Positions 38,514 through 62,421 are shown, counted from the first letter of the stretch. The stretch is DNA of 64,000 bases from Macrostomum hystrix (GCA_950097015.1 CATNEN010000024.1:5580001-5644000), one strand, 5' to 3'. Numbers and translations: made by a program. The notes: generated by a model from the sequence alone, not told the origin.

Positions 38514-41500
38514 TCAGAAGAATTTTAAATCCAGAGGTGATTTCTTGAGTCCGTGAGTCCACAGCAGCTCCAGCAGCAGCAGCAGCAGGCCGCAAGCGTA
38601 CAGGCAGCCGGTGACTATGTACGCACCGGCCACGCCGTCCATGTTAATGGCGTCAGCTTCGGCTGTGACGCCGGACACAACGCAGTCAGGATTCGAAATT
38701 GGAAAATACTTCAGGTTGAGCCGGTTACCAATGCCCGACTCCTGGGCCTTCTCAAGCCTGCGGGCGTGCGCAGAAACGAGCTTGAATCCTACCACAGTGT
38801 TTCACATCCCACAACAGTGTGTCACGTCCTACCAGTGTGTCACATCCCACAACAGTGTGTCACATCCTACCAGTGTGTCACATCCCACAACAGTGTGTCA
38901 CATCCTACCAGTGTGTCACGTCCCACCACACTGTGTCACATCCTACCACAGTGTTTCATATCCAACCACACTGTGTCACGTCCTACCAGTGTGTCACATC
39001 CCACAACAGTGTGTCACGTCCTACCAGTGTGTCACATCCCACAACAGTGTGTCACATCCCACAACAGTGTGTCACATCCCACAACAGTGTGTCACATCCC
39101 ACAACAGTGTGTCACATCCCACAACAGTGTGTCACATCCCACAACAGTGTGTCACATCCCACAACAGTGTGTCACATCCCACAACAGTGTGTCACATCCC
39201 ACAACAGTGTGTCACATCCCACAACAGTGTGTCACATCCCACAACAGTGTGTCACATCCCACAACAGTGTGTCACATCCTACCAGTGTGTCACATCCCAC
39301 AACAGTGTGTCACATCCTACCAGTGTGTCACATCCCACAACAGTGTGTCACATCCTACAACAGTGTGTCACATCCTACCACAGTGTGTCACATCCTACCA
39401 CAGTGTGTCACATCCCCCCACAGTGTGTCAAATCCTACCACAATGTCCCAGATCCTACCACAATGTTCCACATCATATCATAATTTTCAACACAATTTTC
39501 TCTCTCCATGGAGACACTTTGATACAATGTGAATTGAACTTGGAAGATGGCCTAGTGACAGAAATGGGTGTGAAGAATCCTTCGAAAGGAACTATTTTTC
39601 ATAATATTATAGTTTTTATAGTTTTTATAAAAATCATTTTTTGTTTATGGGTAATGAGATTCATAAAAATCCTATTTTTCGCTCGTGACTGGTAGAACCT
39701 GTGAGCTCTTATGCTACGGGAATACAGTGAAACTTCGATAAGTTAAGCGCGCTGAAGTGAACAATTTCTCAGAGTCAATTAGAATGCGAAGATTTAAGAT
39801 GGGGAAAAGTGGGCAGGATTCTGCAGACCCATTTCCGGAGATGATAAAATCGGGGGTTCATAAGCTGCAAAATAGCTCACATGAAGTCGAAAGCTCGTCC
39901 GTAGAACGCATCCTTTGGATAGGCGAAGCTGAGAAAGTACGGACTAAAGACTTCGTCGGCCACGTAGAGCTGGTTGCAATAAGCATTATAATAGTGTGAG
40001 TTCACATTCTGATCAGTGATGCACACCTTGTACGGGTCGGAGTCGGTCAGCAACTAAAAAGGCGTGAGAGAGGTTGCTAATCAGTAGCTTTCGGAGTCTT
40101 TGGCACATCGTTTGGTGGCAGTAGACACGCAGCCAGCGAGATTTCACAATTTCACAAGACTTTACAAGACTTTACAAGACTTTACAAGACTTTACAAGAC
40201 TTTACAAGACTTTACAAGACTTTACAAGACTTTACAAGACTTTACAAGACTTTACAAGACTTTACAAGACTTTACAAGACTTTACAAGACTTTACAAGAC
40301 TTTACAAGACTTTACAAGACTTTACAAGACTTTACAAGACTTTACAAGACTATACAAGACTTTACAAGACTTTAGAAGACTTTAGAAGAAGTAGCTTACA
40401 CTTTGGGCGCACTGCTGCATTGTGTCCACTAGAACCATCTGCCTTTGCAGTTCATAGTACGGCCCAGATGTAGCCAGACTGATCTGCGCGTGAATGCTGG
40501 TCCCCTTGGCAACCAGCACTTTGTACTGCGGATTTGCTAATAGGTCGTTTAAGCCGCGAATTTGCATAGGAGTCACCGAGACGGTTAAATAGGCGGTGAG
40601 ATTGCCTGCGGGACAGTCAAATTGCACACACGCTCAATTGGCTGCTGTTACCCCTCCCGAAACTTGTGCCTACAACAGGATGATTTGCCAACTGGGGAAT
40701 AGCTTGCCAACTGGGGAATAGCTTGCCAACTGGGGAATAGCTTGCCAACTGGGGAATAGCTTGCCAACTGGGGAATAGCTTGCCAACTGGGGAATAGCTT
40801 GCCAACTGGGGAATAGCTTGCCAACTGGGGGAGGGGATAGCTTGCCAACTGGGGAATAGCTTGCCAACTTGGGGAGGGGATAGTTTGCCAACTGGGGAAT
40901 AGCTTGCCAACTGGGGAATAGCTTGCCAACTGGGGAATAGCTTGCCAACTGGGGAATAGCTTGCCAACTGGGGGAGGGGATAGTTTGCCAACTGGGGGAA
41001 GGGATAGCTTGCCAACTGGGGAATAGCTTGCCAACTGGGGGAGGGGATAGCTTGCCAACTGGGGAATAGCTTGCCAACTGGGGGAGGGGATAGTTTGCCA
41101 ACTGGGGAATAGCTTGCCAACTGGGGAATAGCTTGCCAACTGGGGAATAGCTTGCCAACTGGGGAATAGCTTGCCAACTGGGGAATAGCTTGCCAACTGG
41201 GGAATAGCTTGCCAACTGGGGAATAGCTTGCCAACTGGGGAATAGCTTGCCAACTGGGGAATAGCTTGCCAACTGGGGAATAGCTTGCCAACTGGGGAAT
41301 AGCTTGCCAACTGGGGGAGGGGATAGTTTGCCAACTGGGGGAGGGGAAAAATTAACTACAATAGGAAGATATTTTGCCACATGGGGGCTGCTAAGAGGGA
41401 TAAATCATTTTCTATCTGTGGCTGATGATTTTGCCCATTATAGATATCACTTAATTTTATGGATTCAAGGAAGTATTTTCTTGTTTTGTAATGAGCCCAT

Positions 41501-44500
41501 TGGTCTGAGAGAACCATCCGCCCACCTGTGTAAGAGCCAAACACAATCACGGTGAACATCCACCAGAAGGCCATGACAGTTCGCGGGCTCATTGCGAACG
41601 GATAAAAGTCCTGGCCCTGCTGGAGGAAGCTGCCCACCGCGGACCAGATGTACTCCTGCAGCCAGATCTCGTCGGCGATGGCATAGTCCAGCTGCAGGGT
41701 CCAGGCAGTGAAGGGGCTGAAGTAGGCCAGCAAGAAGGTGATCACGGCCACGGCGAATAGAGAGAAGCCCAGCATGACCCACAGGTCGATGGTGAATGGC
41801 GCGAAGATGTTCCACATGCGCGACGCAGCTGGAGGTCGCTTAGCCAGGATTGTGAGGCCCGAGGAGGTCAAGGGGACGGAGAAGTCCACGACAGGTAGGC
41901 GAAGCGTTGTAATGGCGTAGATTAGCGATACGTCGGCTGTCTGTGGACAGTTTTAGTGATTGGTTTAATCAGGCGACACAGGGGACAGGTGAAAATAATG
42001 AGAAGGGCTCGAGTGACAGGTGTAAAGTCTGAAAATTTACTGGGGTCATGGATTTAAAATGGGCTAGACAGGTAAGTTATACGACTGAATTGGGGTAGTG
42101 GGTTTAATTATATAAAACAGGTGCGAGTTATGCGACTGAATTGGGGAGGTGGATTTAATTAGATAAGACAGGTGTGAGTTAAGCTAGCGAGTTGGACGGA
42201 GGGTTTAATTAAATAAGACAACAGGTGTGGGTTATACGACGGAATTGGGGTGGTGGGTTTAATTATATAAAACAGGTGTGAGTTATGCGACTGAATTGGG
42301 GTGGTGGGTTTAATTAGATAAGACAGGTGTGAGTTATGCGACTGAATTGGGGTGGTGGGTTTAATTGGAGAAGACAGGTGAGACTTAAAGTATGTAATCA
42401 ATTTAGAGGCCTGAATCAGCTTTAACGAGCCAGCAGGTGCCCACAATGCCTCACTCCTTTCTGCAGCTCTCCAATGCAGCCAGTAAACAAAGTCGAGTTG
42501 GGGATCGGGCCGCCGAACTGCAGATCCGGTGCCTGTTTAAATATCGACCTGGCAAACGACACAGAACAGGTAAGTTTTCAGTGTTCGAAGCGTTAATCAG
42601 AAATCAAAGATGCGCTGTCACTACCTGAAGTTCATATTTTGCATCAGGAAGAAGAATATCTCCTTTATCTCGCCCGTCACATTGCCGCTCATGTCTGGAT
42701 TCGTGTTTAGGTAAGCCGTAAATGGTGGCACCTGCAATTCACGTAAAGGTTGCGATCCACTACAAAACTGGGAATAAATTATTCTAAACAGAATAGTTGA
42801 AGCTAGACAGGTGTGAGCTCACGATGGGCGCGCAGACAACCAAGGTTCGATTCTTAAAGTCAACGAAGGCGTTGGCGAACACCAGACTGCGCCCGGCGAC
42901 ATGGCGTAGAAACTGCAGACTGGTGTTTCTAGGGAAATACCTGGCACTCTCAATAAAGTCCACAGGCTGGTCGGCAAGCTCATTGTAGGTGGCCGCGAAT
43001 TCAACATAGGGAGCCTCAAGGCGGTTCGAGCTGGCGTTGTAGCTGATCACTGATCGGAAGGTGTTGAAACTCTGCAGCTGTTTGAAGAGAAGTTCGGGGT
43101 GATGCTTGGTCGATTGTGCAACAGGTGAGACTTATCTTCCAACAAGTAAAACTACCTTCCAACAGGTGAGACTACCTTCCAACAGGTGAGACTACCTTCC
43201 AACAGGTGAGACTACCTTCCAACAGGTGAGACTACCTTCCAACAGGTGAGACTACCTTCCAACAGGTGAGACTACCCTCCAACAGGTAAGACTACCTGTC
43301 TAACAGGACAGGCTACCTGTCCAACAGAAGAGGCTATTAATCTAACAGGACAGCGCAACCAAGTACATTTTATTGCCAATTATACTACTGCTACTATTAA
43401 AATACTACTCACCGATCTGACAAAATTGGCCGCAGAACCTCCGCTAACCCAGGGCTGCTCAGGAAAGCAGGAGGCATTGCTGGGTGAGTAGGAGTCGGCT
43501 GTACTATTGACAAAGTTGTTGAACGCTTTGCCCAGAGCGGCCACAGCATCGGCGAAGCGATACTCCAAGCTCTGAAAATTGCAAATTGTACATTTCGCTG
43601 CTGCTCCCAATTCTATATCTACTACTGCACAAGTAACAGTTGGCAACTACCACTGTCTAACAGATGAGACTTACCTTCCAACATTTGAGGCTACCTCTCT
43701 AACAGGTGAGACTACATCTCTAACAGGTGAGACTAACTCTCTAACAGATGAGACTTACCTTCCAACATTTGAGGCTACCTCTCTAACAGGTGAGACTACC
43801 TCTCTAACAGGTGAGGCTACCTCTCTAACAGGTGAGACTACATCTCTAACAGGTGAGACTACATCTCTAACAGGTGAGACTAACTCTCTAACAGGTGAGA
43901 CTACATCTCTAACAGGTGAGACTAACTCTCTAACAGGTGAGACTACATCTCTAGCAGGTGAGAATTACTTTCCAACAGGTGAGACTACCTCTCTAACAGG
44001 TGAGACTAACTCTTTAACTAACTCTCTAACAGGTGAGAATTACTGTCCAGCAGGTAAGAATAACTTCCAACAGCGGGGGTTGTATTGTAGCCTAGCCTAG
44101 TGGGGGTTGTAGCCTAATGGTTGCTCCATACTGGAGCAATTTTCGTCTCTCAGCAAGACAATTAACTCTGTGTGGCTTCAATTCACCCAATTGCTGAATG
44201 GGTGCTGGTTGCTTATTTTGCTAATCTTGCAATTTTGCAATTAGCTGGGGTAATTGAGGGTGGGAGTGGCGTCCCCCCAGTCCATGGACTGAACAGCCGT
44301 ACGCTCTGAAATAAAATGCACAGTGACAAACACCAGCTCGAACTTCTGCTGCTGTTCCCAACTCTAGATCTAGAAGTCCTTGCTTTGCAACACTTCTTCC
44401 CATGAACCCACCGTCACCACATCCTTGTCGCAGGCGGGGAACACGTCCTGCACCGCGGACAGGCAGGAAGCGGCGGTCGAACTCAGCAGGCCGTAGGTGG

Positions 44501-47500
44501 GGTCGCGAACGACCACCAGATTCGAGGAGGTCCTGGCTGGCACGATGGATTTTAGGTCGGCGAGTTTCAGGCCTGTGTCCAGCAGCAGCCAGTGGTAATT
44601 CTGCTGGAGCACATTGGCTGTACGGGCCTGCAGAGGTGTTAAATACTGACATTAAATAGAAATAACTTAGAAGGTGTTAAAATTGACTTGCACTAAAAGG
44701 CTGTGTACAGCTGTTAAGTCCGTGGACTGACACACCCACCAAAATGTCTATCCCAGCTAATGCTGGTACAAATTTTACATTTGGGTGAGCTGAAACACTC
44801 TGAACTGAATTAGAAGACAGGAAGCCTCACCTGTTAGACAGGCAGCCTAGCTGTTAGACAGGTAGCCTAGCTGTTAGACAGGTAGCCTAGCTATTAGACA
44901 GGTAGCCTAGCTATTAGACAGGTAGCCTAGCTGTTAGACAGGTAGCCTAGCTATAAGACAGGTAGCCTAGCTATTAGACAGGTAGCCTAGCTGTTAGACA
45001 GGTAGCCTAGCTGTTAGACAGGTAGCCTAGCTGTTAGACAGGTAGCCTAGCTGTTAGACAGGTAGCCTAGCTGTTAGACAGGTAGCCTAGCTGTTAGACA
45101 GGTAGCCTAGCTGTTAGACAGGTAGCCTAGCTGTTAGACAGGTAGCCTAGCTGTTAGACAGGTAGCCTAGCTGTTAGAAAGGTAGTAGCCTAGTTAGAAA
45201 GGTACTCACAGATTCCAGAGTGCTCAGAACATTGTCTCTAGCCGCTAAAATGACGTTGAATCGCACTTGACCTTTGATTAGCAGAGAAAATATCTGCGTC
45301 AGATTTTTGCCTTCGTCCAGTTGGAAGGCCATGGCGCTCATACCGCTGGCTGTCAGCTCGTTCTGGAAGGCTTCGACCTGTGGCAGTCCTAGAATACAGG
45401 TGAGTATTTTTGTCTAACCGGTGAGCCAGTTGTCTAACAGGTGAGCCAGTTGTCTAACACGTGAGCCAGTTGTCAAAAAGGTGAGTTATTTGTCAAACAG
45501 GTGAGCCAGTAGTCTAACTGGTGAGTCAGTTGTCTAACAGGTGAGCCAGTTGTCTAACAGGTGAGCCAGTAGTCTAACTGGTGAGCCAGTTGTCTAACAG
45601 GTGAGTCATTTGTCTAACAGGTGAGCCAGTTGTCTAACAGGTGAGCCAGTACTACTACAGGTGAGCCAGTAGTCTAACAGGTGAGCCAGTTGTCTAACAG
45701 GTGAGTCATTTGTCTAACAGGTGCGCCAGTTGTCTAACAGGTGAGCCAGTTGTCAAACAGGTTAGTCAGATGTCTGACAACCTACTTTGAAATCTGTCGT
45801 AGAAGATGGCAACCGATGAGGCTCTGTGTAATTTCAGCGCCTCGACTGACGCCCGCAGCAGCAGGCGATGATCCTCGGAGCCGATGAAGTCAAAGGCTGC
45901 GAATGAGTAGATTATAAGCGAGAACTTTTCCTGATCCTGATTATCCTGAGATGGGATAATTTGCTAACTGAGATGGGATAATTTGCTAACTGAGATGGGA
46001 TAATTTGCTAACTGAGATGGGATAATTTGCTAACTGAGATGGGATAATTTGCTAACTGAGATGGGATAATTTGCTAACTGAGATGGGATATTTTACTAAT
46101 AGAAGGGGGATTATTTTCTAACTGACGGGGGTTAAATTGATGAAAGAAAAATAGACGGCGTCAATTTTTATATAAAAACTTATTAAATCACAATAAAAGC
46201 TTAATATATTTAACTGCACAGGGCTTGTTGGAAGTATTCTTTTTAAGCAAGCAAAAATAAAAATTAATGTTTTGCTACTCACCGGACTCTGAGGTCAAAC
46301 TGCAAAGATCGTTGGGGATCACAATGGTTGGCAGTGCGAGGGCTTTGCCAAGCTTCTGCAGGCTCTCCATCAGGGGACAGCCGCCGACACCGATGATGGC
46401 ATTGAGTCCAGCCTCCTGGCAGACTGCGCATTGTATGCAAAAAGATCTTGCGATATTGCACATCAAGTGCAATTCTTCCGGCATGGATTAGTCAATGATT
46501 TGGGATTCTTCAGGCATGGATTAGTCAATGATTTGGGATTCTTCAGGCATGGATTAGTCAATGATTTGGGATTCTTCAGGCATGGATTTGTCAATGATTT
46601 GGGATTCTTCAGGTATGGATTAGCCAATGATTTGGGATTCTTCAGGTATGGATTAGTCAATGATTTGGGATTCTTCAGGCATGGATAAGTCAATGATTTG
46701 GGATTCTTCAGGCATGGATTAGTCAATGATTTGGGATTCTTCAGGTATGGATTAGTCAATGATTTGGGATTCTTCAGGTATGGATTAGTCAATGATTTGG
46801 GATTCTTCAGGTATGGATTAGTCAATGATTTGGGATTCTTCAGGCATGGATTAGTCAATGATTTGGGATTCTTCAGGCATGGATTAGTCAATGATTTGGG
46901 ATTCTTCAGGCATGGATTAGTCAATGATTTGGGATTCTTCAGGCATGGATTAGTCAATGATTTGGGATTCTTCAGGCATGGATTACTCAATGATTTGGGA
47001 TTCTTCAGGCATGGATTACTCAATGATTTGGGATTCTTCAGGTATGGATTAGTCAATGATTTGGGATTCTTCAGGTATGGATTAGTCAATGATTTTGGGA
47101 TTCTTCAGGCATGGATTAGTCAATGATTTGGGATTCTTCAGGCATGGATTAGTCAATGATTTGGGATTCTTCAGGCATGGATAAGTCAATGATTTTGGGA
47201 TTCTTCAGGCATGGATTACTCAATGATTTTGGGATTCTTCAGGCATGGATTAGTCAATGATTTTGGGATTCTTCAGGCATGGATTAGTCAATGATTTGGG
47301 ATTCTTCAGGTTTAATGTGCAAGTGCTATTAGTGCTTTAATCTGTTGTGAAAGTTATGAGTCAGTGCAATATGTCTTCGTTGACACTGTTCGATCTTGTT
47401 GAAAAAATAATTATGTTACTTAATGCCTCTGGGAGATTATTGAAGAGAACGAACATGTAATTAGTCCCTCTTATCATTCTGCTTTAGCGACCAAGGAGTG

Positions 47501-48228
47501 ACCCAGAATAATTTTTTGTGTCATTTAACCTACTTCTGATTCTCTTACCAGCTTGGGTGCTCACTTGTGCTCAGGTGTGCTCAGGCGTGCTCAGGTGTGC
47601 TCAGGTGTGCTCATGTGTGCGCAGAAGTACTCAGATATGCTCAGGTGTTCTCAGGTGTGCTCATGTGTGCGCAGAAGTACTCAGATATGCTCAGGTGTGC
47701 TCAGGTGTGCTCATGTGTGCGCAGAAGTACTCAGATATGCTCAGGTGTGCTCAGGTGTGCTCATGTGTGCGCAGAAGTACTCAGATATGCTCAATTTTGC
47801 TCAAGGGTGCTCAGGTGTGCTCAGGTGTTAGTAGATAAATGTAAGCGCATGTATGTTCAGGTGTGCTCAATTGTGCTCAGGTAAATATAGGCTCAGGTGT
47901 GTTCAGGTGTGCTCAGGTGTGCTCAGGTGAATGTAAGCTCAGGTAAGCTCAGGTGTGTTCAGGTGTGCTCACCCTGTCTCACGGCGGTGACCGATTGGCA
48001 CTTGCTGACGCTGATCAGTCGATAATCCAAGCTGCGACCCGAGCCAGTTGGGAAAATTCTCCAGTTAAGATTGACCGCCCGCTTCACAGCCAGATCAACA
48101 GTTTCAGCTGGGATCAAAGCGTCTTGAATCACCACGGCAATCTTGAATGGCGCGCATTCGAACACCGGTAGCAGCAGCGGCAACAGCAGCAGCAGCAGCA
48201 GCAGCAGCGGCAGCGGCTGTGGGAGCAT
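38514..48228 (-). CDS. Variant ionotropic glutamate receptor / IR-like subunit with ATD, copy A, 13 exons, 851 aa
   Basis: Exons (high to low): 48228-47973, 46423-46283, 45896-45786, 45388-45210, 44627-44412, 43571-43413, 43077-42823, 42731-42625, 42548-42455, 41940-41526, 40605-40400, 40053-39881, 38757-38514. All introns are GT-AG with compatible phases and sum to 2556 nt. Poly-Leu signal peptide, ATD (VCQEAGLNAIIG, AIFYD, NYHWLL), S1 (VPPF, FTGCIGELQKG, ITTLRLPVVDFS), M1, M2 GSFLQQG, M3 WWMF...SYTGNLTAYLTV, S2, M4 GVAGAYIV. Confidence 0.92.
38790..39470. repeat. 20-bp minisatellite (CACAACAGTGTGTCACATCC), iGluR-A intron 12
   Basis: Tandem array read directly. Confidence 0.93.
40145..40385. 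repeat. 10-bp minisatellite (ACTTTACAAG), iGluR-A intron 11
   Basis: About 23 copies. Confidence 0.95.
40685..41345. repeat. 19-bp minisatellite (GGGGAATAGCTTGCCAACT), iGluR-A intron 10
   Basis: About 30 copies, some with GGGGAGGG insertions. Confidence 0.95.
42055..42385. repeat. About 52-bp degenerate minisatellite, iGluR-A intron 9
   Basis: About 6 copies of ACAGGTGTGAGTTATGCGACTGAATTGGGGTGGTGGGTTTAATTAGATAAG. Confidence 0.85.
43120..43330. repeat. 20-bp minisatellite (AACAGGTGAGACTACCTTCC), iGluR-A intron 6
   Basis: About 10 copies, related to the arrays in introns 3, 4 and 5. Confidence 0.9.
43655..44060. repeat. 21-bp minisatellite (CTCTCTAACAGGTGAGACTAC), iGluR-A intron 5
   Basis: About 19 copies. 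Source of the TSLTGET ORF. Confidence 0.9.
44100..44330 (+). mobile_element. tRNA-derived SINE, degenerate copy in iGluR-A intron 5
   Basis: CAGCAAGACAATTAACTCTG...CTGAATGGGTGCTGG...TTAGCTGGGGTAATTGAGGGTGGG...CCCCAGTCCATGGACTGAACAGCCGTAC matches the 36996 and 59955 copies. Confidence 0.65.
44825..45200. repeat. 20-bp minisatellite (CTGTTAGACAGGTAGCCTAG), iGluR-A intron 4
   Basis: About 18 copies. The reverse complement (CTAGGCTACCTGTCTAACAG) matches the intron 5/6 units. Confidence 0.93.
45405..45780. repeat. 20-bp minisatellite (TTGTCTAACAGGTGAGCCAG), iGluR-A intron 3
   Basis: About 18 copies filling almost the whole intron. Confidence 0.93.
45945..46100. repeat. 22-bp minisatellite (GCTAACTGAGATGGGATAATTT), iGluR-A intron 2
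   Basis: About 7 copies. Confidence 0.9.
46470..47310. repeat. 33-bp minisatellite (TTCTTCAGGCATGGATTAGTCAATGATTTGGGA), iGluR-A intron 1
   Basis: About 25 copies. Confidence 0.95.
47550..47970. repeat. 10-bp-based minisatellite (GCTCAGGTGT) with about 60-bp higher-order units, iGluR-A intron 1
   Basis: The array abuts the exon-1 donor. Confidence 0.88.
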
Positions 48229-48879
48229 GATTGTCGAATTCCGCACCAAAAGGCAACAATCTGTGCTAACGGATTGTTCGTGGGCTGAACAAATATAAAA
48301 AACTTCTCCAATAGCGACGCTCCAAGGCTGAGTCCATTTTCGCGTTGCCATGGAAACTAGTGTGGCGTCAAAGTGTAAAAGGACACTTTAGTTTCACTGA
48401 ACAAGCCGCATTGAAAATGTTTCCTTTGATCATTGGTTTTGCTTTCAACATATATAATGCCAATCAGTTTTATAATTTGCCAATTCCTGGTGAGTGCTTT
48501 TAAAAGTGAAATCCATTTTATCGACTAATTGCATTAATTAGTTTAATTAGATGAGCCACATCGGATGCCCATTTTCTAATTACCTGCAGCCATGATCATA
48601 AACTTGGCTCTGCCAAGCAAAACAAACAAACTGGTGTTGCTTTCATAGAAATTCGCATCTGATCAGTTTCACAAAGCCAAGAATAATTGATTGAATAATT
48701 TTGTGGCCAATTAGTCCATCAGATTCTCTTACTGGCGGATGACACGTTAATGAGCAGGATGACGAAAGTAGGAAACATAGCAATTTTAGATCGCTCTTAA
48801 ACTGATGAACAAGCTTTTTATTCCTATTTCGTCAGACTGATACTCTTGTCCGACTAGATATCTGAAAATTTAGGGACTT

Positions 48880-49200
48880 TCCGGAGAATCACCCACAGGA
48901 AAACACTCACAGGGAGTCCCGCAGAATCGCTCTTAATATTTTGTCCAGGATAATCACTTACAGGAAATCCCCAGCGAATCGTTTTCAATGAATTACTTGA
49001 GAATAACTTTCCCTATCTCTCGCAGGGAATCCCTGGAGAATCCCTCGCAGGGAATCCCTGGAGAATCCCTCGCAGGGAATCCCTGGAGAATCCCTCAGAG
49101 GGAATCAGTGGAGAATCTCTCACAGGGAATCCCAGGAGAATGAATCACAGGGAATCTCCAATTAATCAGTTGATAATCACTCACAGGATTCTAGGAATTC
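48880..49200. repeat. About 25-bp degenerate repeat (CAGGGAATCCCTGGAGAATCCCTCG)
   Basis: Three perfect copies at about 49020-49095 with degenerate flanks. Confidence 0.75.
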
Positions 49201-49285
49201 CCTCATAATCCTTCACTACCCTTCGGGAATTCCAGTGCAGTCGGATCAGGGATTGTGCTGTTTGTCGACCTCTTTGATATTTTCA

Positions 49286-49458
49286 GAGGGCAATGGCACA
49301 TTTGGTGATATTAGACCCGCAGCCAGTGAGAGGCAGTTCTGCCCATTCCGCTGACCCCTGAGCGCACGCGCAGACAGATACTGTACGCAGGCACACGCTC
49401 ACACAAGTGTGTACATCTGCTCTTAATTTCTCATCGTCAGGCAGTGTACACTTTTACT
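49286..49458 (+). repeat. Dispersed/duplicated non-coding element, copy 2
   Basis: See the 36340-36496 copy. Confidence 0.75.
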
Positions 49459-49838
49459 GCGCCCTTTGGAGGTTGGCCCCAGCCGAATGTGGCGCTCTGC
49501 CATTCACCCCTGATCCCAAATCTCAGTAGACAGGCAATTATAGAAACTACTGTTCAAATAAATAAATGCAAAGTCGTTCTTAAAAGCATGCACTTTGGAG
49601 TCATTTATAGATTTCATTGTTAATAAACGTGTTATTGACTCGCAAGTAAAAGAAATTAGCCTGATTAAACAAAAAACTTGTGCTTTAAATATGGTGAATT
49701 AATATTCATTTTTGTGTTTTAACGTACCTAAAATGTTTGTTAGAAAGCTAACTAGTACTCATTGTGTAGTGCTTTGGTGATTGAGAAGGCGAATTTGTAT
49801 CCTCAATTTCACGGAATCGCTTACTAATAAAGTACGCT

Positions 49839-52130: not shown

Positions 52131-52236
52131 AGGGAGTACCCAGTACAGTTCCAGCCCAGCATTCCCAACAGTCTACTATTATAAGTAGTCAGTTTAGTTA
52201 ATCGCAGTCTAAAATTAGGCTAAATTGATTCCTTTC

Positions 52237-55200
52237 TCAGTAGCATGGCAGGGCCTTCGGCGCCTGGCCGCAGATTTGAGTCCACAGCAGCTCCAGGGCC
52301 AGCAGCACAATTCCACAGACGTACAGAGCGCCTGTGACTATGAATGCTCCGGCGACACCCTCGAGGGTGATGGCGTCGGCTTCGGCGGTGACGGCGGACG
52401 CGACGCATTCCGGATTGGAGCGCGGAAAGTACTGGATCTCAAGCCACTGGCTCAGGCCCGAGTCCTGCGCCTTCTCCAACCTGATGCGGGTTGTTAAGGT
52501 TTGAGCTTTTGAGCTAGAGCTCAACTCAGACATATATAGTGCGAGAGAGTGGGAGAGAGTGCGAGAGAGTGGGAGAGAGTGGGAGAGAGTGGGAGAGAGT
52601 GGGAGAGAGTGGGAGAGAGTGGGAGAGAGTGGGAGAGAGTGGGAGAGAGTATGAGAGAGTGGGAGAGAGTGGGAGAGAGTGGGAGAGAGTGGGAGAGAGT
52701 ATGAGAGAGTGGGAGAGAGTGGGAGAGAGTGGGAGAACGTATGAGAGAGTGGGAGAGAGTATGAGAGAGTGGGAGAGAGTGGGAGCGAGTGGGAGAGAGT
52801 GGGAGAGAGTGGGAGAGAGTGGGAGCGAGTGGGAGAGAGTGGGATAGAGTGGGAGAGAGTATGAGAGAGTGGGAGAGAGTGGGAGAGAGTGGGAGAACGT
52901 ATGAGAGAGTGGGAGAGAGTGGGAGAGAGTGGGAGAGAGCATGAGAGAGTGGGAGAGAGTGGGAGAGAGTGGGAGAACGTATGAGAGAGTGGGAGAGAGT
53001 GGGAGAGAGTGGGAGAGAGTGGGAGCGAGTGGGAGAGAGTGGGATAGAGTGGGAGAGAGTATGAGAGAGTGGGAGAGAGTGGGAGAGAGTGGGAGAACGT
53101 ATGAGAGAGTGGGAGAGAGTGGGAGAGAGTCGGAGAGAGTATGAGAGAGTGGGAGAGAGTGGGAGAGAGTGGGAGAACGTATGAGAGAGTGGGAGAGAGT
53201 GGGAGAGAGTGGGAGAGAGTATGAGAGAGTGGGAGAGAGTGGGAGAGAGTGGGAGAACGTATGAGAGAGTGGGAGAGAGTGGGAGAGAGTGGGAGAGAGT
53301 ATGAGAGAGTGGGAGAGAGTGGGAGAGAGTGGGAGAGAGTATGAGAGAGTGGGAGAGAGTGGGAGCGAGTGGGAGAGAGTATGAGAGAGTGGGAGAGAGT
53401 ATGAGAGAGTGGGAGAGAGTGAGAGAGAGTGGGAGAGAGTGGGAGAGAGTTTGAGCTCAGTCTGGCAACTCACAGCACACAGGTTTGAGTTCAGTCTGGC
53501 AGCTCACAGCACACAGGTTTGAGTTCAGTCTGGCAGCTCACAGCCCACAGGTTTGAGTTCAGTCTGGCAGCACAGTACTCACAGGAAGTTGAAGGCGGGC
53601 ATGTAGAAGGCGCCCTTCGGAAAAGCCATGCCCAGCGAGTAGGTGTTGAAGGTCTCGGCGGCAATGTACACGCGATTGCAGTAGGCGTTGTAGTAGTGAA
53701 TGTTGACATTCTGGTCCACAATGCACACTTGATAAGGATTGGAGTCCAATGCTACCTAGAGGTTGGAATCACGCGCTTATCAAAGTTTGTTGTATAAAAT
53801 GGAACAAAATCTTGCTTTGCTGGACATGTGAATTAATGACCAATCTAATGAAATGACCATGTGAATTAATGACTAATCTAATGAAATGACCATGTGAATT
53901 AATGACCAATCTAATGAAATGACCTTGTGAATTAATGACTAATCTAATGAAATGACCATGTGAATTAATGACCAATCTAATGAAATGACCTTGTGAATTA
54001 ATGACCAATCTAATGAAATGACCTTGTGAATTAATGACTAATCTAATGAAATGACCATGTGAATTAATGACCAATCTAATGAAATGACCTTGTGAATTAA
54101 TGACCAATCTAATGAAATGACCATGTGAATTAATGACTAATCTAATGAAATGACCATGTGAATTAATGACCAATCTAATGAAATGACCATGTGAATTAAT
54201 GACTAATCTAATGAAATGACCATGTGAATTAATGACCAATCTAATGAAATGACCTTGTGAATTAATTGTTGTAAAAATGTGAAACAAAATCAAATCTCGA
54301 GCATTACCGTCTCAGAACAGATGGGCATTGAGTCGACCACCACCATTTGTTTCCGCAGCTCATAGTACGGACCGGAAGTGTCCAATTGGATCTGAGCGTA
54401 GATGTTCGTTCCCTTGGACACGAGGACTTTGTAGTGCGGATTGGCCAGCACATCCTCCAGGCTGTTGATTGGCAGGTGGGTCACCGACACGGTCAGGTAG
54501 GCAGTGAGATTGCCTGGCGGAGTTAGGAGGAAAATGCAATTAGGGCAGCAGCGAGGAACACATTCAGACCTACCTATTTAGACCTAGAAATTTTACTAGC
54601 CTATCAAATAATTTTTATTGGAGCTTAAATGTTGCGAATTAAAAAAGAAACTTTAATCCCTGGTTCCGTTAATAAATATAAAGTAACGAAGGCGACAGTC
54701 CTGCCATCCAAATATAAATAATTATATGATTCTAACAGTAGGACTACCAAACCATTTTGCCGCCCGTGGAATTCCCCCCCTTGTAATTTTTTTGGCAGCG
54801 CCCTAATGCTAGCAGCGTTGGGTGGTGACTCATTGGTTGACAGACTATGGACTGTGTATTTTGGCCTGAGCAGTGAAATTGGAGAAATTCGCGTCAGGGT
54901 GTCCATAGTGGCCTAGGAAGACGGAGATGATGCAGGCACATTCGGGTGACATGCTGATAGATTTTGAAGGCCTGGCAAGGCCGCACTGGGGCGCAGTGCT
55001 AATTTGTGTATAGGGGTGTATAAAAGACACTAGCGCTTATGGGAATCACACCTACGGCCAGAAATAATACTTATTTTAGAAGATGCGCAACAAAAAGTTG
55101 GCCCGTGTTGTTGAGTTTCGTGTGCTTGCGTTGCTCCGTTAGGATGCAGCACAAAAAATTGTCAGGGGGGATCCCCCTTGGTAGTTCTACTGTCAATTTC

Positions 55201-58200
55201 AACTGTTAAATGTAGGCTTGCAGCCGACAGCACAGCCGCAGCTATTGCGCGGCGCATCTGAAGGCTGCTTATCGCTGTTCACCCCCCTTGCAGTGGGGGT
55301 GGCTGGAGGGCGGGTGTACACCGCCGCGCGTTTTCTGGACTTCCGTCAGCGCGATTGGATAAAGTGTACACTCATCACCCGGCCCCCCCTGAGGACTGAT
55401 TTCTTATCAGCCTTCCGCCCCGGCTTGATCTGCTCTGTGCGTGCGGGGCTGGGGTGGGGGACACTGCTGCCTATTCTGGGTGCCTCCTGCCCTCCCCGGC
55501 TGGTCTGTGCTGTTGTGTGTGGTGCCTGCTCAGGGGAGGCGGCGCGATGGGCGCTTAAGCGCCTAGTTCGCCGGTCTGGGGGCGTGCCGCTCCGTCGCTT
55601 GTGCGACAAGTGCCCCGGGCCCCCTGCAAATAGATGGATAGAGATAGAGGGGGGGACGCCACACATACCCTCAATTACCCCAGCTGGCTAAAGGTCATGA
55701 ACTGTTTAAGTGTAGTCTGGAATCGAACTCTCAACATTCAAGTCGCGAGTCCGACAGTCTAACAATAGAAAGACCAGGGGGACATTTCAAATACCCAGAT
55801 TTTTCTTCTTTCTGTATGTCAACCAATCGCCATGAAATCCAGAACACCCTCGTGGCCTTTCCCCAGAGGGGAAAATTTCCCCCAGGGGGGAAGATCTGGC
55901 GTGGTCATTCTACTGTTAATGACCAGGCTACAGCCATCTTGCTATAGTTACCTGTATAAGCCGCCAGCACAATCACGGTGAACATCCACCAGAAGGCCAT
56001 GACAGTTCGCGGGCTCATTGCGAACGGATAAAAGTCCTGGCCCTGCTGGAGGAAGCTGCCCAGAGTTGACCAGATGTACTCCTGCAGCCAGATCTCATCA
56101 GCGAACGCGTAATCGATGCCGAGGTTCCACGCGGTGAACGGACTGAAGTAGGCGAACACGAATGTGACGACGGCGACGAAGGACAGAGCTGCTAGTAGCA
56201 GCAGCCAGACATCGTAGTGCAACGGTGCGTACAGATTCCACATCCGGGATGAGGGCGGAGGTCTCCGCACCAGAATAGTGTTGCCGGATGAAGACAGCGG
56301 AAATGAGAAGTCAACCACTTGGCCACGAAGGGTGGTGATGGCATAGACGATTGACAGCTGGGCGTTCTGGAGAGGTTCGAAGGCAGCAACTTTGAATTCA
56401 CCCAGTCGAGCTCGTTTCTGCTTCCAGTCCCTGCTCCAGGGCCTGGAGCAGGGAATTTTTAACCCACCCCTTTCTGCACTTCGCCAATGCAGCCGGTGAA
56501 CAGATTGGATCCAGGAATCGGAGCGCCGAACTGTAGATCCCGGGCCTGCTTGAAGATGGAACTGGAACAATATGAACTGTCGCTTGGTCACGAGCATGCA
56601 GACTGGGATATCGTTTCTTTTCCTCTCCTCCACTCTCCTCTCCTCTCCTCTCCTCTCCTCTCCTCTCCTCTCCTCTCCTCTCCTCTCCTCTCCTCTCCTC
56701 TCCTCTCCTCTCCTCTCCTCTCCTCTCCTCTCCTCTCCTCTCCTCTCCTCTCCTCTCCTCTCCTCTTCTCTCCTCTCCTCTCCTCTCCTCTACTCTCCTC
56801 TCCTCTCCTCTCCTCTCCTCTCCTCTCCTATCCTATCCTCTCCTCTCCTCTCCTCTCCTCTCCTCTCCTCTCCTCTCCTCTCCTCTCCTCTCCTCTCCTC
56901 TCCTCTCCTCTCCTCTCCTCTCCTCTCGTCTTCTATCCTCTCATACTCTCTTCTAAAGAATGTCCCAGTTTGAGAAAGATTTCGATCACAGCTACATAAG
57001 AACAGTAAAATTTCCTTTTTAAACGATCGGCCATCTTCAAATTTGTTACTCTCCCTTCTTTTTTTAATATGTCGCTCTTGCTAATTTCAATTCACTTACC
57101 GAAATTTGAGCTTAGACTCAAAGATTTTAAACCACTCGGAGATCTCGCCAGTGACATTGCCGCTCATGTCGGGATTAACATTCAAATAGGAGGTGAATGG
57201 GGGAATCTGCAATAAAAGTGTGGTGTCTGCATAGAAGAGAGCCTGGGTAATGTTCTGATTTCCTAATGTCCTGGAACTCACGGTTGGCGCGCATACTGTC
57301 AGAGTTCGATTCTTGAAGTCCACAAAGGTGTTGGCAAACACTGGATTCCGGTTCGAGTTCGGTCTGAGAATTTGCACACTGGCGTTGCTGGGATAATACC
57401 TGGCACTTTCAATGAACTCCACCGGCTGATTGGCCAGCTCATTGTAGGTGGCTACGAATTCAACGTAGGGAGCCTCTAGGCGGTTCGAGCTGGCGTTGTA
57501 GCTGATCACTGACAGGTACGACCTGAGGCTCTGCAACTGGTAGTCGGTGATGGCGCGACGAGTTGCCGTCAAGAAATGGGGAGTAGACTGGGAAGAGATG
57601 GTGAGTAGACAGGGAGAGATGGGGAGTAGACAGGGGAGAGATGGGGAGTAGACAGGGGAGAGACGGTGAGTAGACAGGGAAGAGATGGTGAGTAGACAGG
57701 GAGAGATGGGGAGTAGACAGGGAGAGATTGTGAGTAGACAGGGGAGAGATGGTGAGTAGACAGGAGAGATAGGGAGTAGACAGGGGAGAGATGGTGAGCA
57801 GACAGGGAGAGATAGGGAGTAGACAGGGGAGAGATGGGGAGTAGACTGGGGAGAGATGGCGAGTAGAAATATGAGAGATGGCGAGTAGACTGGGGAGAGA
57901 TGGGGAGTAGACTGGGGAGAGATGGCGAGTAGAAATATGAGAGATGGCGAGTAGACTGGGGAGATATGGAGAGTAGACAGGAGAGAGATGGGGAGTAGAC
58001 TGGGGAGAGATGGCGAGTAGAAATATGAGAGATGGCGAGTAGACTGGGGAGAGATGGAGAGTAGACAGGAGAGAGATGGGGAGTAGACTGGGGAGAGATG
58101 GCGAGTAGAAAGATGAGAGATGGCGAGTAGACTGGGGAGAGATGGAGAGTAGACAGGAGAGAGATGGGGAGTAGACTGGGGAGAGATGGCGAGTAGAAAG

Positions 58201-61200
58201 ATGAGAGATGGCGAGTAGACTGGGGAGAGATGGGGAGTAGACTGGGGAGAGATGGCGAGTAGAAATATGAGAGATGGCGAGTAGACTGGGGAGATATGGA
58301 GAGTAGACAGGAGAGAGATGGGGAGTAGACTGGGGAGAGATGGCGAGTAGAAATATGAGAGATGGCGAGTAGACTGGGGAGAGATGGAGAGTAGACAGGA
58401 GAGAGATGGGGAGTAGACTGGGGAGAGATGGCGAGTAGAAAGATGAGAGATGGCGAGTAGACTGGGGAGAGATGGAGAGTAGACAGGAGAGAGATGGGGA
58501 GTAGACTGGGGAGAGATGGCGAGTAGAAAGATGAGAGATGGCGAGTAGACTGGGGAGAGATGGGGAGTAGACAGGGGAGAGATGGCGAGTAGAAAGATGA
58601 GAGATGGCGAGTAGACTGGGGAGAGATGGGGAGTAGACAGGGTAGAGATGGGGAGTAGACAGGAGAGAGATAGGGAGTAGACAGGGGAGAGATGGTGAGT
58701 AGACTGGGGAGAGATGGGGAGAAAGACAGGAAAGATGGGGAGTAGACAAGGGAGAGGTATGTTGTGGAAAATTTCTCCTATTGGACTCTATATCGATAGA
58801 GAAGAGGTGAGACAGAAGAGTGTTAAGCAAGTGATTTGAGTAAAGAATGGCCGTAGGGTATAGACAACGGACTGAGATGTGATACTCGTATAAGCTCAGG
58901 GTATTAAGGTCAAATGATGATGTCTGGCTATTAGCGTACTATTTCACACAACACATACAGACAGATTCTATAGCAATCAACATAATATACACTTGTATAT
59001 TAGCAGCATTGATTTTTGTCTGTAGCATTCGCTCGAGATTGTTGATTTATTTCTCATTACGAGTGTGCATGGCAGGCAGACTATCACCTGCGATCTCTGC
59101 AGGAGAGAGGGTGAGAGGAGAGTTGGAGAGAGGAGAGCACCTCCAATTACAGGCACTGACGCGGAAGAGAAGAAGCGCAGACGATAAATTTGAATTTGCC
59201 GATATTTAGAATATTTTAATATTCTTCGTCATGGCAGAAAAAGGAGAGGAGAGAGAGAAGAGACAGGAGGGAGAGGGGAGACACAGGAGGTAGAGAGGAG
59301 AGGTAGAGAGGAGAGGTAGAGAGGAGAGGTAGAGAGGAGAGGTAGAGGGAGAGAGGAGAGGTAGAGAGGAGAGGTAGAGGGAGAGAGGAGAGGTAGAGAG
59401 GAGAGGTAGAGGGAGAGGGGAGAGAGGAGAGGTAAAGAGGAGAGGTAGAGAGGAGTGGTAGAGGGTAGAGAGGAGAGGTAGAGAGGAGAGGTAGAGAGGA
59501 GGGGTAGAGAGGAGGGGTAGAGGGGACAGAGGAGAGGTAGAGAGGAGAGGTAGAGGGTAGAGAGGAGAGGTAGAGAAGAGAGAAGTAGAGAGGAAAGTGG
59601 AGGGAGGTTAAGCAGTGCTCCCAGATAAACTCACAGACTTGATGAAGCTTGCCGCTGAGTCGCCGCTAACCCATGGCTGCAGCGGCTGGCAGGAGGCGTT
59701 GCTGACTCGGTAGGTTGGCGAAGGGCCATCGGACATGTTCTTGTAGGTCTCGGCCAGTGTCAGCAGGGCCTCAACGAATCGAAATTCGATGCTCTGTCGG
59801 CGAGAATTTCGAATAATTTGTAAGGGTTTTTATGTAGTTAGTTTTTTATGCCTTTTGCTTTCGTTTAGACTTTTAATATATCAAATGTAATTATTATAAA
59901 TCATTATTACGCTCGTAATATTAATTGATTACACCTGCCTCAATCGGGCCAGATGTGCAGCCGACAGCACAGCCGCAGATATTGCACAGCGTATCTGAAC
60001 GCTGCGTACGGCTGTTCAGTCCATGGACTGGGGCACGTCACACCCACCCGTCAGTTACCCCAGCTAATGCTGGTACCCATTTTACAGCTGGGTGAACTGA
60101 AGCGATGCAGAGTTAAGTGTCTTGCTAAAGGACACAAATTGTTTCAGTGTAGTCGGGAATCGAACCCCCGACCTTTCAGTTGTGAGCCTATTTTGATCTA
60201 CTTCATTGCTATATTTATAAGAAACATTTTAGTAATTAACCAAATTATATGTCATAATTGTATTCCTTTTATTTAGATACAAGGCCTGTTTAGCATAAAC
60301 AAATAGATACAATTAAAGGCCTACAGCGACCAACAAGGGGGCTAGTAAATTTGCTACCAGCTAGTTTCCCATCCGACTTAATCGCTGTACTTTGTCCTTT
60401 CGTGTCACGTCTCTCAAACCACTGATTAAGTAGGCCTCCAATTACTGATTATTCTGTTAATTAACACTCGGTTTATTTTTGCCATATGATATAAATCTTC
60501 ATATTTATTGGCACAACCGACAAAAGCTTAACTGATCAATTGTGGCATCGATACAAAATATCCTTTATTGATTCAACAGGCTAATTGTTATGGACCCGCC
60601 ATACTAAGGTGTCACGATCAATAACAGAACCACAAGGTATCCGCTGCTAACTACTATTCTCTTTTCATGTGACCCGTGTGTGTGACAGCGAGAACTTTAT
60701 TTCAATCCGCAATCACAGATCCCTGATCCTCAGATCCCAGATCCTCAGATCCCAGATCCTCAGATCCCAGATCCTCAGATCCCAGATCCTCAGATCCCAG
60801 ATCCTCAGATCCCAGATCCTCAGATCCCTGATCCTCAGATCCCTGATCCTCAGATCCCAGATCCTCAGATCCCTGATCCTCAGATCCCTGATCCTCAGAT
60901 CCCTGATCCTCAGATCCCTGATCCTCAGATCCCTGATCCTCAGATCCCTGATCCTCAGATCCCTGATCCTCAGATCCCTGATCCTCAGATCCCTGATCCT
61001 CAGATCCCTGATCCTCAGATCCCTGATCCTCAGATCCCTGATCCTCAGATCCCTGATAAGCAAACTGCTGATGATAAGCTTCCTAACCGTTACGCCATTC
61101 CTGCCGCAGTCCGGGAAGACATCCCTCAGTGACGGTGGGCAGCCGCCGCCGCCGCCGCCGCCGCCCACAAGGCTGAAGGTCGGGCCGCGCACGACAGCCA

Positions 61201-62421
61201 CATTGGCGGCTCCCCAGCTGTACAGGCGGGCCAGAGCTCGCAGCTCAGGCAGCCGCAGACCCGAGGCGTCAGGCAGCAGCCAGTGATAATCTTGCCGCAG
61301 CAGACCTCCAGCAAGGGCCTGGCGGGGAACGTGTCAGGAAATTATATCATAAAAGCAGTCGCAACCTAGCATTTAGAAAAAAGCTTTAAACTTTGATAGG
61401 GTCTCCAATTAAACTGATATTAACAACCTGTAGTTCATTATTAAAACATTTTTTATCAACGAAATTAAAACTGAGAAAAGGATTTGCGATCACATTGAAG
61501 CGGCAAGTTTCAGAAGAAATTCCAATCCTTAAAGAAAATAATCCAAATACTACATGAAAATCACAATCCAAAAAGAAATCCCAATCCTAGCTCGTAAAAG
61601 ACAATCACATCCTAGAATATAATAACAATCCAATATAATAAATCCAAATCTTACAAGAAAATCCCGATCCTAGAAGAAAATCCCAATCCTACAAAAAATC
61701 CCAATCCAAACATAAAATCCCAATCCTACAAAAATCCTAATCCTACAAAAAATCCCAATCTTACAAAAAATCCCAATCCAAACATAAAATCCCAATCCTA
61801 CAAAAATCCTAATCCTACAATAAAATCCCGATCCTACAAGAAAATCCCGATCCTCGAAGAAAATCCCAATTCTACAAAAATCCCAATCCTACAAGAAAAT
61901 CCCAATCCTACAAGAAAATCCTAATCCTACAAGAAAATCCTAATCCTACAAGAAAATCCCGATCCTAGAAGAAAATCCCAATTCTACAAAAATCCCAATC
62001 CTACAAGAAAATCCTAATCCTACAAGAAAATCCTAATCCTACAAGAAAATCCCGATCCTAGAAGAAAATCCCAAGTCTACAAAAATCCCAATCCTACAAA
62101 AAATCCCAATCCTACAAGAAAATCCCGATCCTAGAAGAATATCCCGAACCTAGAAGAAAATCCCAATCCTAAAAGAAAGTTACAATACCAGAATAAGATC
62201 ACGGACTCATTCAATTTACACCTGTACAATCCGAGAACTCACCAACTCAAGAATGCTCAAAGCGTTATCTTTCGTGGCAAAGATCACGTTGAATCGCACC
62301 TGAGTCTTGGCCAGCGTGGTGAGGATCTCGCTGACATTTCTGCCAGAGTCCAGCTGGAAGGCCATCACGCTTGTGCCCCTAGCTGACAGGAGATTTTGAA
62401 AGGCCTCGACCTGCTGCAGAC
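52237..62421 (-). CDS. Variant ionotropic glutamate receptor / IR-like subunit, copy B (exons 4-13; 5' exons beyond the window)
   Basis: Exons (high to low): 62421-62243, 61318-61088, 59793-59635, 57536-57282, 57206-57100, 56561-56468, 56366-55952, 54513-54308, 53755-53583, 52480-52237. Phases match copy A, and lengths match except exon 5 (231 vs 216). Motifs IPPF, FTGCIGEVQKG, ITTLRGQVVDFS, GSFLQQG, AYTGNLTAYLTV, LEKAQDSG, GVAGAFIV. Confidence 0.92.
52543..53450. repeat. 10-bp minisatellite (GGGAGAGAGT), iGluR-B intron 12
   Basis: About 90 units, followed by 3-4 copies of a 34-bp unit (53450-53575). Confidence 0.95.
53826..54266. repeat. 33-bp minisatellite (TGAATTAATGACCAATCTAATGAAATGACCATG), iGluR-B intron 11
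   Basis: About 13 copies. Confidence 0.95.
55218..55765 (-). mobile_element. tRNA-SINE copy interrupted by an approximately 370-bp GC-rich insertion
   Basis: 55218-55281 matches 59955-60020 (GCAGCCGACAGCACAGCCGCAG...GCTGTTCA). The SINE resumes at about 55650 (GGGACGCCACAC...TTACCCCAGCT...GGAATCGAAC). The intervening segment ends in ATAG-type microsatellite. Confidence 0.6.
56625..56930. repeat. (CTCCT)n pentamer array, iGluR-B intron 8
   Basis: About 60 units. Confidence 0.95.
57575..58750. repeat. 20-21-bp minisatellite (GAGTAGACTGGGGAGAGATGG and variants), iGluR-B intron 6
   Basis: Purine-rich array with repeating variant blocks. Confidence 0.93.
59240..59600. repeat. 13-bp purine array (GAGAGGAGAGGTA), iGluR-B intron 6
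   Basis: Tandem units read directly. Confidence 0.9.
59955..60190 (-). mobile_element. tRNA-derived SINE, best-preserved copy, iGluR-B intron 5
   Basis: Minus strand: GGGGTTCGATTCCCGAC (B-box), GTGTCCTTTAGCAAGACACTTAACTC, CCCAGCTGTAAAATGGGTACC, CCCCAGTCCATGGACTGAACAGCCGTAC. Confidence 0.72.
60715..61056. repeat. 15-bp minisatellite (CTGATCCTCAGATCC), iGluR-B intron 5
   Basis: About 22 copies. Confidence 0.95.
61540..62180. repeat. About 19-20-bp degenerate minisatellite (AAATCCCAATCCTACAAGA), iGluR-B intron 4
   Basis: Tandem units read directly. Confidence 0.9.

Follow-up and report, generated by a model that had tools for sequence, protein, structure and literature searches.

Tandem ionotropic glutamate receptor genes with a rewritten M3 gate in the flatworm Macrostomum hystrix

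No element of glutamate receptors is more conserved than the SYTANLAAF gate of the M3 segment, and what is known of its positions 4 and 7 comes mostly from engineered or disease mutants. Here we describe a stretch of Macrostomum hystrix DNA (GCA_950097015.1 CATNEN010000024.1:5580001-5644000; 64,000 nt, hereafter the window, with positions counted from its first base) whose minus strand carries, at 38514-62421, two paralogous ionotropic glutamate receptor (iGluR) genes arranged head-to-tail (gene B upstream of gene A), in which this gate is rewritten. Among solved structures, the best matches to the family of A and B are the AMPA and kainate receptors (GluA2, GluK2), which share with the two genes an amino-terminal domain (ATD), an S1/S2 clamshell, the three-layer build with M1-M2-M3-M4, a QQG pore tip with Asp at +4, Arg485, an acidic residue at 705 and the disulfide cysteines of the ligand-binding domain (LBD). 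The two genes depart from the AMPA/kainate pattern in the gate itself (S/A-YTGNLTAY as compared to SYTANLAAF), in the linker that follows it (ERM replaced by SVT), in the substitution of Thr480 by Ala and in a C-terminal tail of about 14 aa. We consider it likely that A and B are intact, selectively maintained tandem duplicates that encode full-length subunits, and that they belong to a Macrostomum-only, AKDF-like iGluR family (hereafter the YTG family) placed outside the AMPA, kainate and Phi-like classes.

Three further groups of described receptors invite comparison. In GluA2, A618 (motif position 4) acts as the hinge of M3 when the channel opens, and the constriction of the closed state is made up of T617, A621, T625 and M629 (PMC9068512); position 7 is the residue proposed as the agonist-controlled gate (PMC3434102; PMC9068512), bulky residues at this position lock NMDA receptors open (PMC3434102), and Thr at position 8 confers constitutive activity on delta, AMPA and kainate receptors (PMC3434102). 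The corresponding gate mutants (GluD2 Lurcher A8T; NMDA A7Y and A7C) are altered in the same three-residue M3 stretch as the YTG family, in which, however, the change is natural, invariant in the readable members, and places Thr at position 7 instead of 8 (together with Gly at position 4). The second group comprises Phi (GluF; Ramos-Vicente 2018, PMC6307864) and Zeta, a mollusc-only class reported as the sister of Phi (PMC8437780): both resemble the YTG family in being non-canonical AKDF receptors that occur patchily and in particular lineages, have expanded in tandem and vary in pocket residues 653/655, and in some Phi proteins the gate is also less conserved. The third group, the insect ionotropic receptors (IRs; i.e. 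the IR8a/IR25a co-receptors and the tuning IRs), is likewise iGluR-derived, with M3 gates that have diverged and gene sets that have expanded in tandem within single lineages. Like gene A, the co-receptors have a full ATD, but their D2 lobe carries an additional loop or helical 'beam' that A and B lack, whereas the tuning IRs differ from gene A in having an absent or reduced ATD and in having usually lost the canonical amino-acid-binding residues.

The exons of both genes were taken from stop-to-stop frames of the minus strand between 38.5 and 62.5 kb, which display two colinear iGluR-like exon series; the junctions are the best-scoring of all phase-compatible GT/AG pairs when compared to homologues from M. 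lignano, with a single one set by eye. The resulting layout is as follows.

38514-48228, minus strand: gene A, complete coding sequence, 13 exons, open model of 2553 nt and 851 aa
48228-47973, 46423-46283, 45896-45786, 45388-45210 and 44627-44412, minus strand (high to low): gene A exons 1-5
43571-43413, 43077-42823, 42731-42625 and 42548-42455, minus strand (high to low): gene A exons 6-9
41940-41526, 40605-40400, 40053-39881 and 38757-38517, minus strand (high to low): gene A exons 10-13
38514-38516, minus strand: TGA stop of gene A, 38514 being its final base
52237-62421, minus strand: 3' part of gene B, 10 exons in the window, partial model of 684 aa, equivalent to exons 4-13 of A
62421-62243, 61318-61088, 59793-59635, 57536-57282 and 57206-57100, minus strand (high to low): gene B exons 1-5 in the window, 62421 being the first base of the first of them
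56561-56468, 56366-55952, 54513-54308, 53755-53583 and 52480-52240, minus strand (high to low): gene B exons 6-10 in the window
52237-52239, minus strand: TGA stop of gene B
48229-52236, no strand: spacer from the stop of B to the start codon of A, holding a minisatellite (29 nt x 78) at 49837-52094
62459-64000, no strand: 29-nt minisatellite in an intron of gene B, reaching the end of the window

The product of gene A reads, in order, signal peptide, ATD, S1, M1-M2-M3, S2, M4 and the short tail. Every modelled splice junction of the two genes is GT...AG, the nine introns common to A and B match in phase (0,0,0,0,2,0,1,0,2), and the last eight exons have the same lengths in both (159, 255, 107, 94, 415, 206, 173 and 241 nt). 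The first three ATD exons of gene B lie beyond base 64000 (i.e. outside the window) and are unseen because the 29-nt minisatellite fills the intron up to the window end. The head-to-tail pair and the identical intron phases that the original prediction had proposed are therefore borne out by the open frames and splice models, while its statement that both genes carry full ATD exons holds for A and not for B, of which only the equivalents of A's exons 4-7 are present in the window. Minisatellites (units of 5-51 nt, at most 78 copies) fill most of the introns of both genes and the intergenic spacer, their arrays differ between the two paralogues, and examples are found at 40685-41316, 46472-47310, 49837-52094, 52538-53450, 57572-58756 and 62459-64000.

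The history of the pair can be read from the M. lignano protein model P0164, of which residues 1-345 are 81% identical to the TM-to-C-terminus part of B (65% to A), and residues 346-769, which follow a new signal peptide, are 70% identical to the ATD-S1 part of A (57% to B). This pattern indicates that the model is a fusion of two genes, namely of the B-orthologue with its 3' half and the A-orthologue with its 5' half, from which it follows that the B-then-A tandem order also exists in M. lignano and that the duplication is older than the split between the species. Between A and B the ratio of non-synonymous to synonymous substitution rates (dN/dS) is about 0.18 (with dS saturated), which points to purifying selection on both copies. 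Decaying duplicates, or artefacts of assembly or annotation, are what a repeat-rich region with minisatellite-filled introns and an incomplete gene B might lead one to expect; we regard this explanation as extremely improbable, since all exons are open, with canonical splice sites and matching lengths, the dN/dS value is low, A and B each resemble their respective M. lignano orthologues more closely than they resemble each other, and 91% of the words sampled from gene A's transmembrane (TM) exon are present in a separate DNA run, possibly that of the source sample itself.

The gate motif of both genes is formed only by splicing, as a phase-1 intron splits the Gly codon (YTG/NLTAYL, the slash marking the exon junction). 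The elements concerned are the following.

41526-41940, minus strand: gene A exon 10 (415 nt), end of S1 with Arg485, M1, the M2 loop FLQQGQD and M3 up to S-Y-T-G (first base of the Gly codon)
40606-41525, minus strand: gene A intron 10, phase 1, within the Gly4 codon, mostly occupied by a 19-nt minisatellite at 40685-41316
40400-40605, minus strand: gene A exon 11, rest of the Gly4 codon, NLTAYLTVSVT (remainder of the M3 gate and M3-S2 linker) and start of S2 (KGTS)
55952-56366, minus strand: gene B exon 7 (415 nt), counterpart of A exon 10, ending in A-Y-T-G (first base of the Gly codon)
54514-55951, minus strand: gene B intron 7, the matching phase-1 intron in the Gly4 codon
54308-54513, minus strand: gene B exon 8, NLTAYLTVSVT and start of S2 (KGTN)

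After splicing, M3 reads S/A-YTGNLTAYLTVSVT (SYTGNLTAYL in A, AYTGNLTAYL in B), continuing across the junction as SYTG/NLTAYLTVSVT and AYTG/NLTAYLTVSVT, respectively; the motif and its three replacements (A4G, A7T, F9Y), as well as the QQG pore tip, were thus correctly foreseen. The pore loop is alike in the two genes (FLQQGQDFYPFAMSPR, including FLQQGQD). Residue numbers were transferred from an M2-M3 alignment to rat GluA2 that contains no gaps (in the GluA2 alignment through M1-M4, gaps are confined to loops), and give the following correspondences.

GluA2 Q586 (Q/R site), pore: Gln in A and B
GluA2 D590 (+4), pore: Asp in A and B
GluA2 T617 and T625, gate lining: kept in A and B
GluA2 A618 (motif position 4), gating hinge: Gly in A and B
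GluA2 A621 (position 7), gate lining: Thr in A and B
GluA2 A622 (position 8), Lurcher site: Ala, unchanged in A and B
GluA2 F623 (position 9): Tyr in A and B
GluA2 E627-R628-M629, post-M3 linker: Ser-Val-Thr in A and B (M629 replaced by Thr)

With respect to SYTANLAAF, gene A keeps six of the nine residues (SYTGNLTAY) and gene B five, positions 2, 3, 5, 6 and 8 being intact and positions 4, 7 and 9 changed in both. Across 114 representative iGluR gates, Gly4 was found in five, all of them M. lignano members of the YTG family, which argues that the motif is no chance feature; Thr7 and Tyr9 occur in 10 gates each, and both are also found outside the family. Within it, Gly4 and Thr7 are invariant in every member with a readable gate. 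As judged from residue identity, the subunits would form cation channels, probably Ca2+-permeable, with an alpha-amino acid or one of its close analogues as agonist, and the glycine hinge together with the more polar gate ring would shift the closed-open equilibrium or the kinetics as compared to AMPA and kainate receptors.

A different reading of the same residues is that the proteins are not ligand-gated channels at all, being either constitutively leaky or non-conducting, Delta-like scaffolds for adhesion or signalling through the ATD and LBD. It could draw on the constitutive activity caused by position-7 and position-8 substitutions in NMDA, delta, AMPA and kainate receptors (PMC3434102), on the retention of the ATD and on the very short cytoplasmic tail. 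We nevertheless hold it to be improbable, as the pore loop is the best-conserved segment of the family (its core QQGQDFYPFAMSPR is invariant), which argues that ion conduction matters, and as Thr is a far smaller change than the Tyr or the methanethiosulfonate (MTS) adducts of the mutant studies. Moreover, Thr7 is present outside the family in five representatives whose gate is otherwise ordinary (YTANLTAF), and Thr7 alone is therefore probably tolerated.

We delineated the YTG family by a gate of the form Y-T-G-[ND]-[LM]-T-A, a phase-1 intron in the Gly4 codon and the pore sequence QQGQDFYPFA(M/V)SPR. The gate and pore motifs are found in A, in B and in the M. lignano proteins P0164, P0166, P0165, P0004, P0002 and P0006, and the Gly4-codon intron recurs in the distant paralogue P0165 (L001 11525-11665, M. 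lignano NIVC01000845.1; borders ACGG/GTGAGG ... TTGCAG/GCGACCTG), which makes the intron position a family trait. A scan of 1.84 billion representative sequences with gene A's TM exon (HMMER) recovered 1004 iGluRs, nine of them at E<1e-30; the seven of these nine that were looked up are all from M. lignano (7/7). A word search with one M. lignano relative returned members from M. lignano only, distributed over several paralogue lineages, and the next relatives are M. lignano proteins with a YTADMIGYL gate, proteins of Cichlidogyrus and Spirometra, and transcript-derived proteins. As judged from the sequences compared, the YTG family is real, conserved, undescribed and, as so far seen, restricted to Macrostomum. 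A literature search for Macrostomum iGluRs found nothing relevant, and one for the YTGNL, YTGDL or SYTGNL motifs found no iGluR paper that contains them.

In order to place the family we used a maximum likelihood tree (LG+C20+F+G4 with posterior mean site frequencies, PMSF; 64 rows, 444 columns of the LBD and transmembrane domain, TMD; unrooted), anchored for AMPA by vertebrate GluA1-4 and for kainate by GluK1 (axolotl GRIK1). A and B are sisters (100/99) nested in the YTG family (100/99), which in turn falls in a 17-row, flatworm-rich clade (100/99). The far side of the tree unites AMPA with kainate-type receptors (100/100), and these with a hemichordate/echinoderm/amphioxus/xenacoelomorph clade that we designate Phi-like (100/100); a 100/100 branch parts the YTG family from AMPA, kainate and Phi-like receptors together. 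Between the two sides are situated proteins of Owenia (annelid) and Tubulanus (nemertean) and molluscan proteins automatically named 'delta-1-like', in which the S2 motif GTN recurs; the molluscan ones differ from the YTG family in keeping YTANLAAF/Y. The deuterostome Phi-like clade also differs from the YTG family in its grouping with AMPA and kainate. A protein tried as a Delta anchor (P0045) was rejected, being kainate-like.

Within the flatworm-rich clade (100/99), the Macrostomum YTADMIGYL family (P0010, P0016) resembles the YTG family in its rewritten gate and its QQGQDFYP pore, but forms a sub-clade with the Cichlidogyrus and Spirometra proteins, keeps Ala4 and alters positions 5-8. Beside the YTG family, in the same flatworm-rich clade, we also observed a long-branched group (gates YAANLF, YTANFF and YSANLF) that includes an intronless, iGluR-like open reading frame of 753 aa from contig L002 (Logan DRR639055, 860-3121).

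Constrained searches under LG+F+G4, compared by the approximately unbiased (AU) test, rejected the grouping of the family with each of three classes: forcing it with AMPA cost 154 log-likelihood units (lnL; p = 6e-6), with kainate-type receptors 153 (p = 3e-52) and with the Phi-like clade 111 (p = 1e-33). The comparison with AMPA, kainate and Phi that had been proposed alongside the original prediction thus speaks against grouping as ordinary orthologues of any of the three (delta-lnL 111-154), and its claim that the pair is neither AMPA nor kainate stands on the 100/100 branch and the AU rejections. That A and B are merely fast-evolving orthologues of AMPA, kainate or Phi receptors we consider very improbable: the best matches in the PDB are kainate and AMPA receptors, the architecture and pore are AMPA/kainate-like, long-branch effects are possible to some degree and the anchors of the tree are those of AMPA, kainate-type and Phi-like receptors, but the separating branch has 100/100 support, the AU p values run from 6e-6 down to 3e-52, and identity over LBD+TMD is 24-30% to the AMPA, kainate and Phi-like classes as opposed to 42-81% inside the YTG family. 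Against solved structures, the full-length M. lignano relative P0166 scored 140 bits with GluK2, 128 with GluA2 and 126 with GluD1, and no NMDA chain was present among the best 60 PDB matches of either P0166 or gene A's TM exon.

The domain content of gene A is that of a complete receptor. Exon 10 of gene A matches the Pfam family Lig_chan at 52.6 bits (cut-off 30.8) and GluA2 structures at E 7e-21, and in both genes the LBD keeps Arg485, an acidic residue at 705 (Glu replaced by Asp) and the Cys718-Cys773 pair, with Tyr450 replaced by Phe and Thr480 by Ala. S2 contains no extra-loop insertion relative to GluA2 or GluK1 and is, if anything, shorter. The Pfam scan of the single ATD exons gave no match (the exons being too short), and the ATD was recognised with a local hidden Markov model (HMM) trained on N-terminal regions from a diverse set of 24 iGluRs.

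42823-48228, minus strand: gene A signal peptide and ATD (exons 1-7), recognised by the local ATD HMM
57282-62421, minus strand: gene B equivalents of A's exons 4-7, distal ~60% of the ATD (25 bits, partial domain)

With this model the first 433 residues of gene A score 79 bits, the match spanning positions 18-374 out of 418, as compared to a maximum of 5.5 bits among 500 shuffles. Furthermore, over 418 aa the N-terminus of gene A shows 70% identity with P0164:346-769, itself a match to ANF_receptor (26.0, cut-off 25.4); P0166 matches ANF_receptor at 54.4 bits, and its residues 29-793 align end to end with GluK2 structures (E 8e-40). In the ATD of gene B, eight consecutive Gly (SLVGGGGGGGGCPPS) are encoded by the second exon in the window (61088-61318), which exceeds the corresponding exon of A by 15 nt. 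At the other end of the protein, the tail after M4 has only about 14 residues (A 38517-38560, B 52240-52285); the C-termini of P0166, P0165 and P0002 (M. lignano) share the pattern P-L-[DQ]-C-V-[IVL]-[YF], the corresponding ends being PLDLKFF in A and KALPCY in B, and the motif could be a short sorting or docking signal.

This domain content bears on a further explanation, namely that the proteins are IR-like chemoreceptors by which sensory cells detect environmental ligands, A and B being related in the manner of tuning and co-receptor partners. In its favour are the lineage-specific, multi-copy and tandem nature of the family, its divergent gate (as IRs typically have) and its altered pocket (T480A, GTS/GTN). 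On the other hand, a complete ATD is present in gene A and in the full-length M. lignano models (that of B being partly visible), unlike in most tuning IRs, S2 lacks the extra loop of the co-receptors, Arg485 and the acidic 705 are kept, and one-to-one orthologues with conserved synteny in two Macrostomum species and a dN/dS of 0.18 are unlike rapid birth-and-death evolution. Regarding the co-receptors, gene A thus has the ATD without the D2-lobe loop or beam; regarding the tuning IRs, it has the full ATD together with both binding residues. We rate the chemosensory explanation as possible but doubtful, and note that the one-to-one M. lignano orthologues, the dN/dS of about 0.18, Arg485 and the acidic 705 are no less compatible with a conserved, amino-acid-gated receptor than with a chemoreceptor that evolves fast. 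Consequently, the view of the original prediction that the pair is no classical IR is supported (by the full ATD of A as compared to tuning IRs, and by an S2 devoid of the extra loop of IR8a/IR25a), as is that of a lineage-specific expansion (the close matches looked up and those of the word search being all from M. lignano, in several paralogue lineages), whereas the occurrence of YTGNL-type motifs in insect IRs that it had stated found no support in the literature search.

Several points weigh against our placing of A and B as amino-acid-gated subunits of a separate AKDF-like family. Thr480, which contacts the ligand amino group in GluA2, is Ala here, and the 653-655 selectivity segment, whose alignment register is ambiguous, is GTS in one gene (A) and GTN in the other, so that the agonist may be other than glutamate itself; both the ligand and the gating effect are proposed from residue identity. 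The constrained trees of the AU tests came from searches under LG+F+G4 that were stopped at 280 s. The designation AKDF-like rests on similarity to PDB structures, because the tree is unrooted and its anchors do not extend to Delta, NMDA, epsilon, lambda or IR sequences, and the label Phi-like is our own, derived not from curated names but from the taxa of the deuterostome clade and from the fact that kainate, delta and AMPA structures are equally remote from it. Finally, the run search found no RNA run that holds gene A's TM exon.

The two neighbours share, in addition, a stretch of the pore-coding exon that is identical at the nucleotide level.

41542-41636, minus strand: 95-nt tract identical in both paralogues, copy of gene A, from the M2 pore loop to early M3
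55968-56062, minus strand: the same 95-nt tract, copy of gene B

The tract comprises 31 consecutive identical codons and ends about 14 nt short of the donor site of the exon; given that elsewhere 49% of the identical, degenerate amino acids use the same codon, the probability of such a run is about 1e-8. When the M. lignano B-orthologue is compared to B, 7 of the 31 tract residues differ (i.e. the segment is no more conserved than the remaining protein), which argues for conversion after the species split instead of constraint. A recent gene conversion between A and B is the most likely origin of the tract. An exon-intron duplex of the RNA-editing type was examined for the tract and rejected, the inverted repeats being weak (74% complementary, 19-23 nt) and located in differing places in A and B. 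Elsewhere in the pair, exon 7 of A (42823-43077) and exon 4 of B (57282-57536) contain a 30-codon window in which 21 of 27 codons are identical, and dS for the same stretch is 0.65 as compared to about 1.6 overall; the raised synonymous identity may mark an older conversion tract.

A bolder interpretation extends these observations to a new flatworm-specific class in which the glycine hinge and a ring of threonines in the hydrophobic gate would bring about unusual gating (very high open probability, standing leak, or an opening that involves all four M3 segments), A and B would form an obligate heteromer and their pores would be kept identical by repeated conversion. We deem it unlikely. The A/B heteromer had been put forward as a possibility in the original prediction, and is speculative here too. 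Under the more restrained reading, that of maintained tandem duplicates in a Macrostomum family outside the AMPA, kainate and Phi-like classes, the YTG receptors would amount to a natural experiment in how the hinge and the hydrophobic seal of the gate can be rebuilt, carried out across a whole family under purifying selection with the pore intact. Moreover, flatworms appear to hold iGluR clades of their own, and they are absent from both the reference iGluR classification (PMC6307864) and the 2026 ligand-selectivity paper (PMC13648236); M. lignano offers a tractable model for where such receptors act. The B-A pair with its putatively converted pore segment would represent a small and clean case of concerted evolution, confined to the channel-lining part.

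The neighbouring genes in the window are unrelated to iGluRs, and no third iGluR copy was found elsewhere in the window (1-38000 included). As to the original prediction's suggestion that the array may continue, it is gene B itself that extends past the window end. The other features are listed below.

1459-3363, plus strand: uninterrupted frame of 635 aa with many hydrophobic segments and no Pfam match
6737-7417, plus strand: gene for a mitochondrial-type ribosomal protein L7/L12 (MRPL12-like)
10753-11562, minus strand: Tc1/mariner-like transposase over two frames, a helix-turn-helix (HTH) in one and DDE_3 in the other
15976-24361, plus strand: ankyrin-repeat gene
26192-27674, plus strand: protein kinase gene

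In the ankyrin-repeat gene, two coding blocks flank a block at 18-24 kb that is skewed in both GC and AT (GC skew about 0.7).

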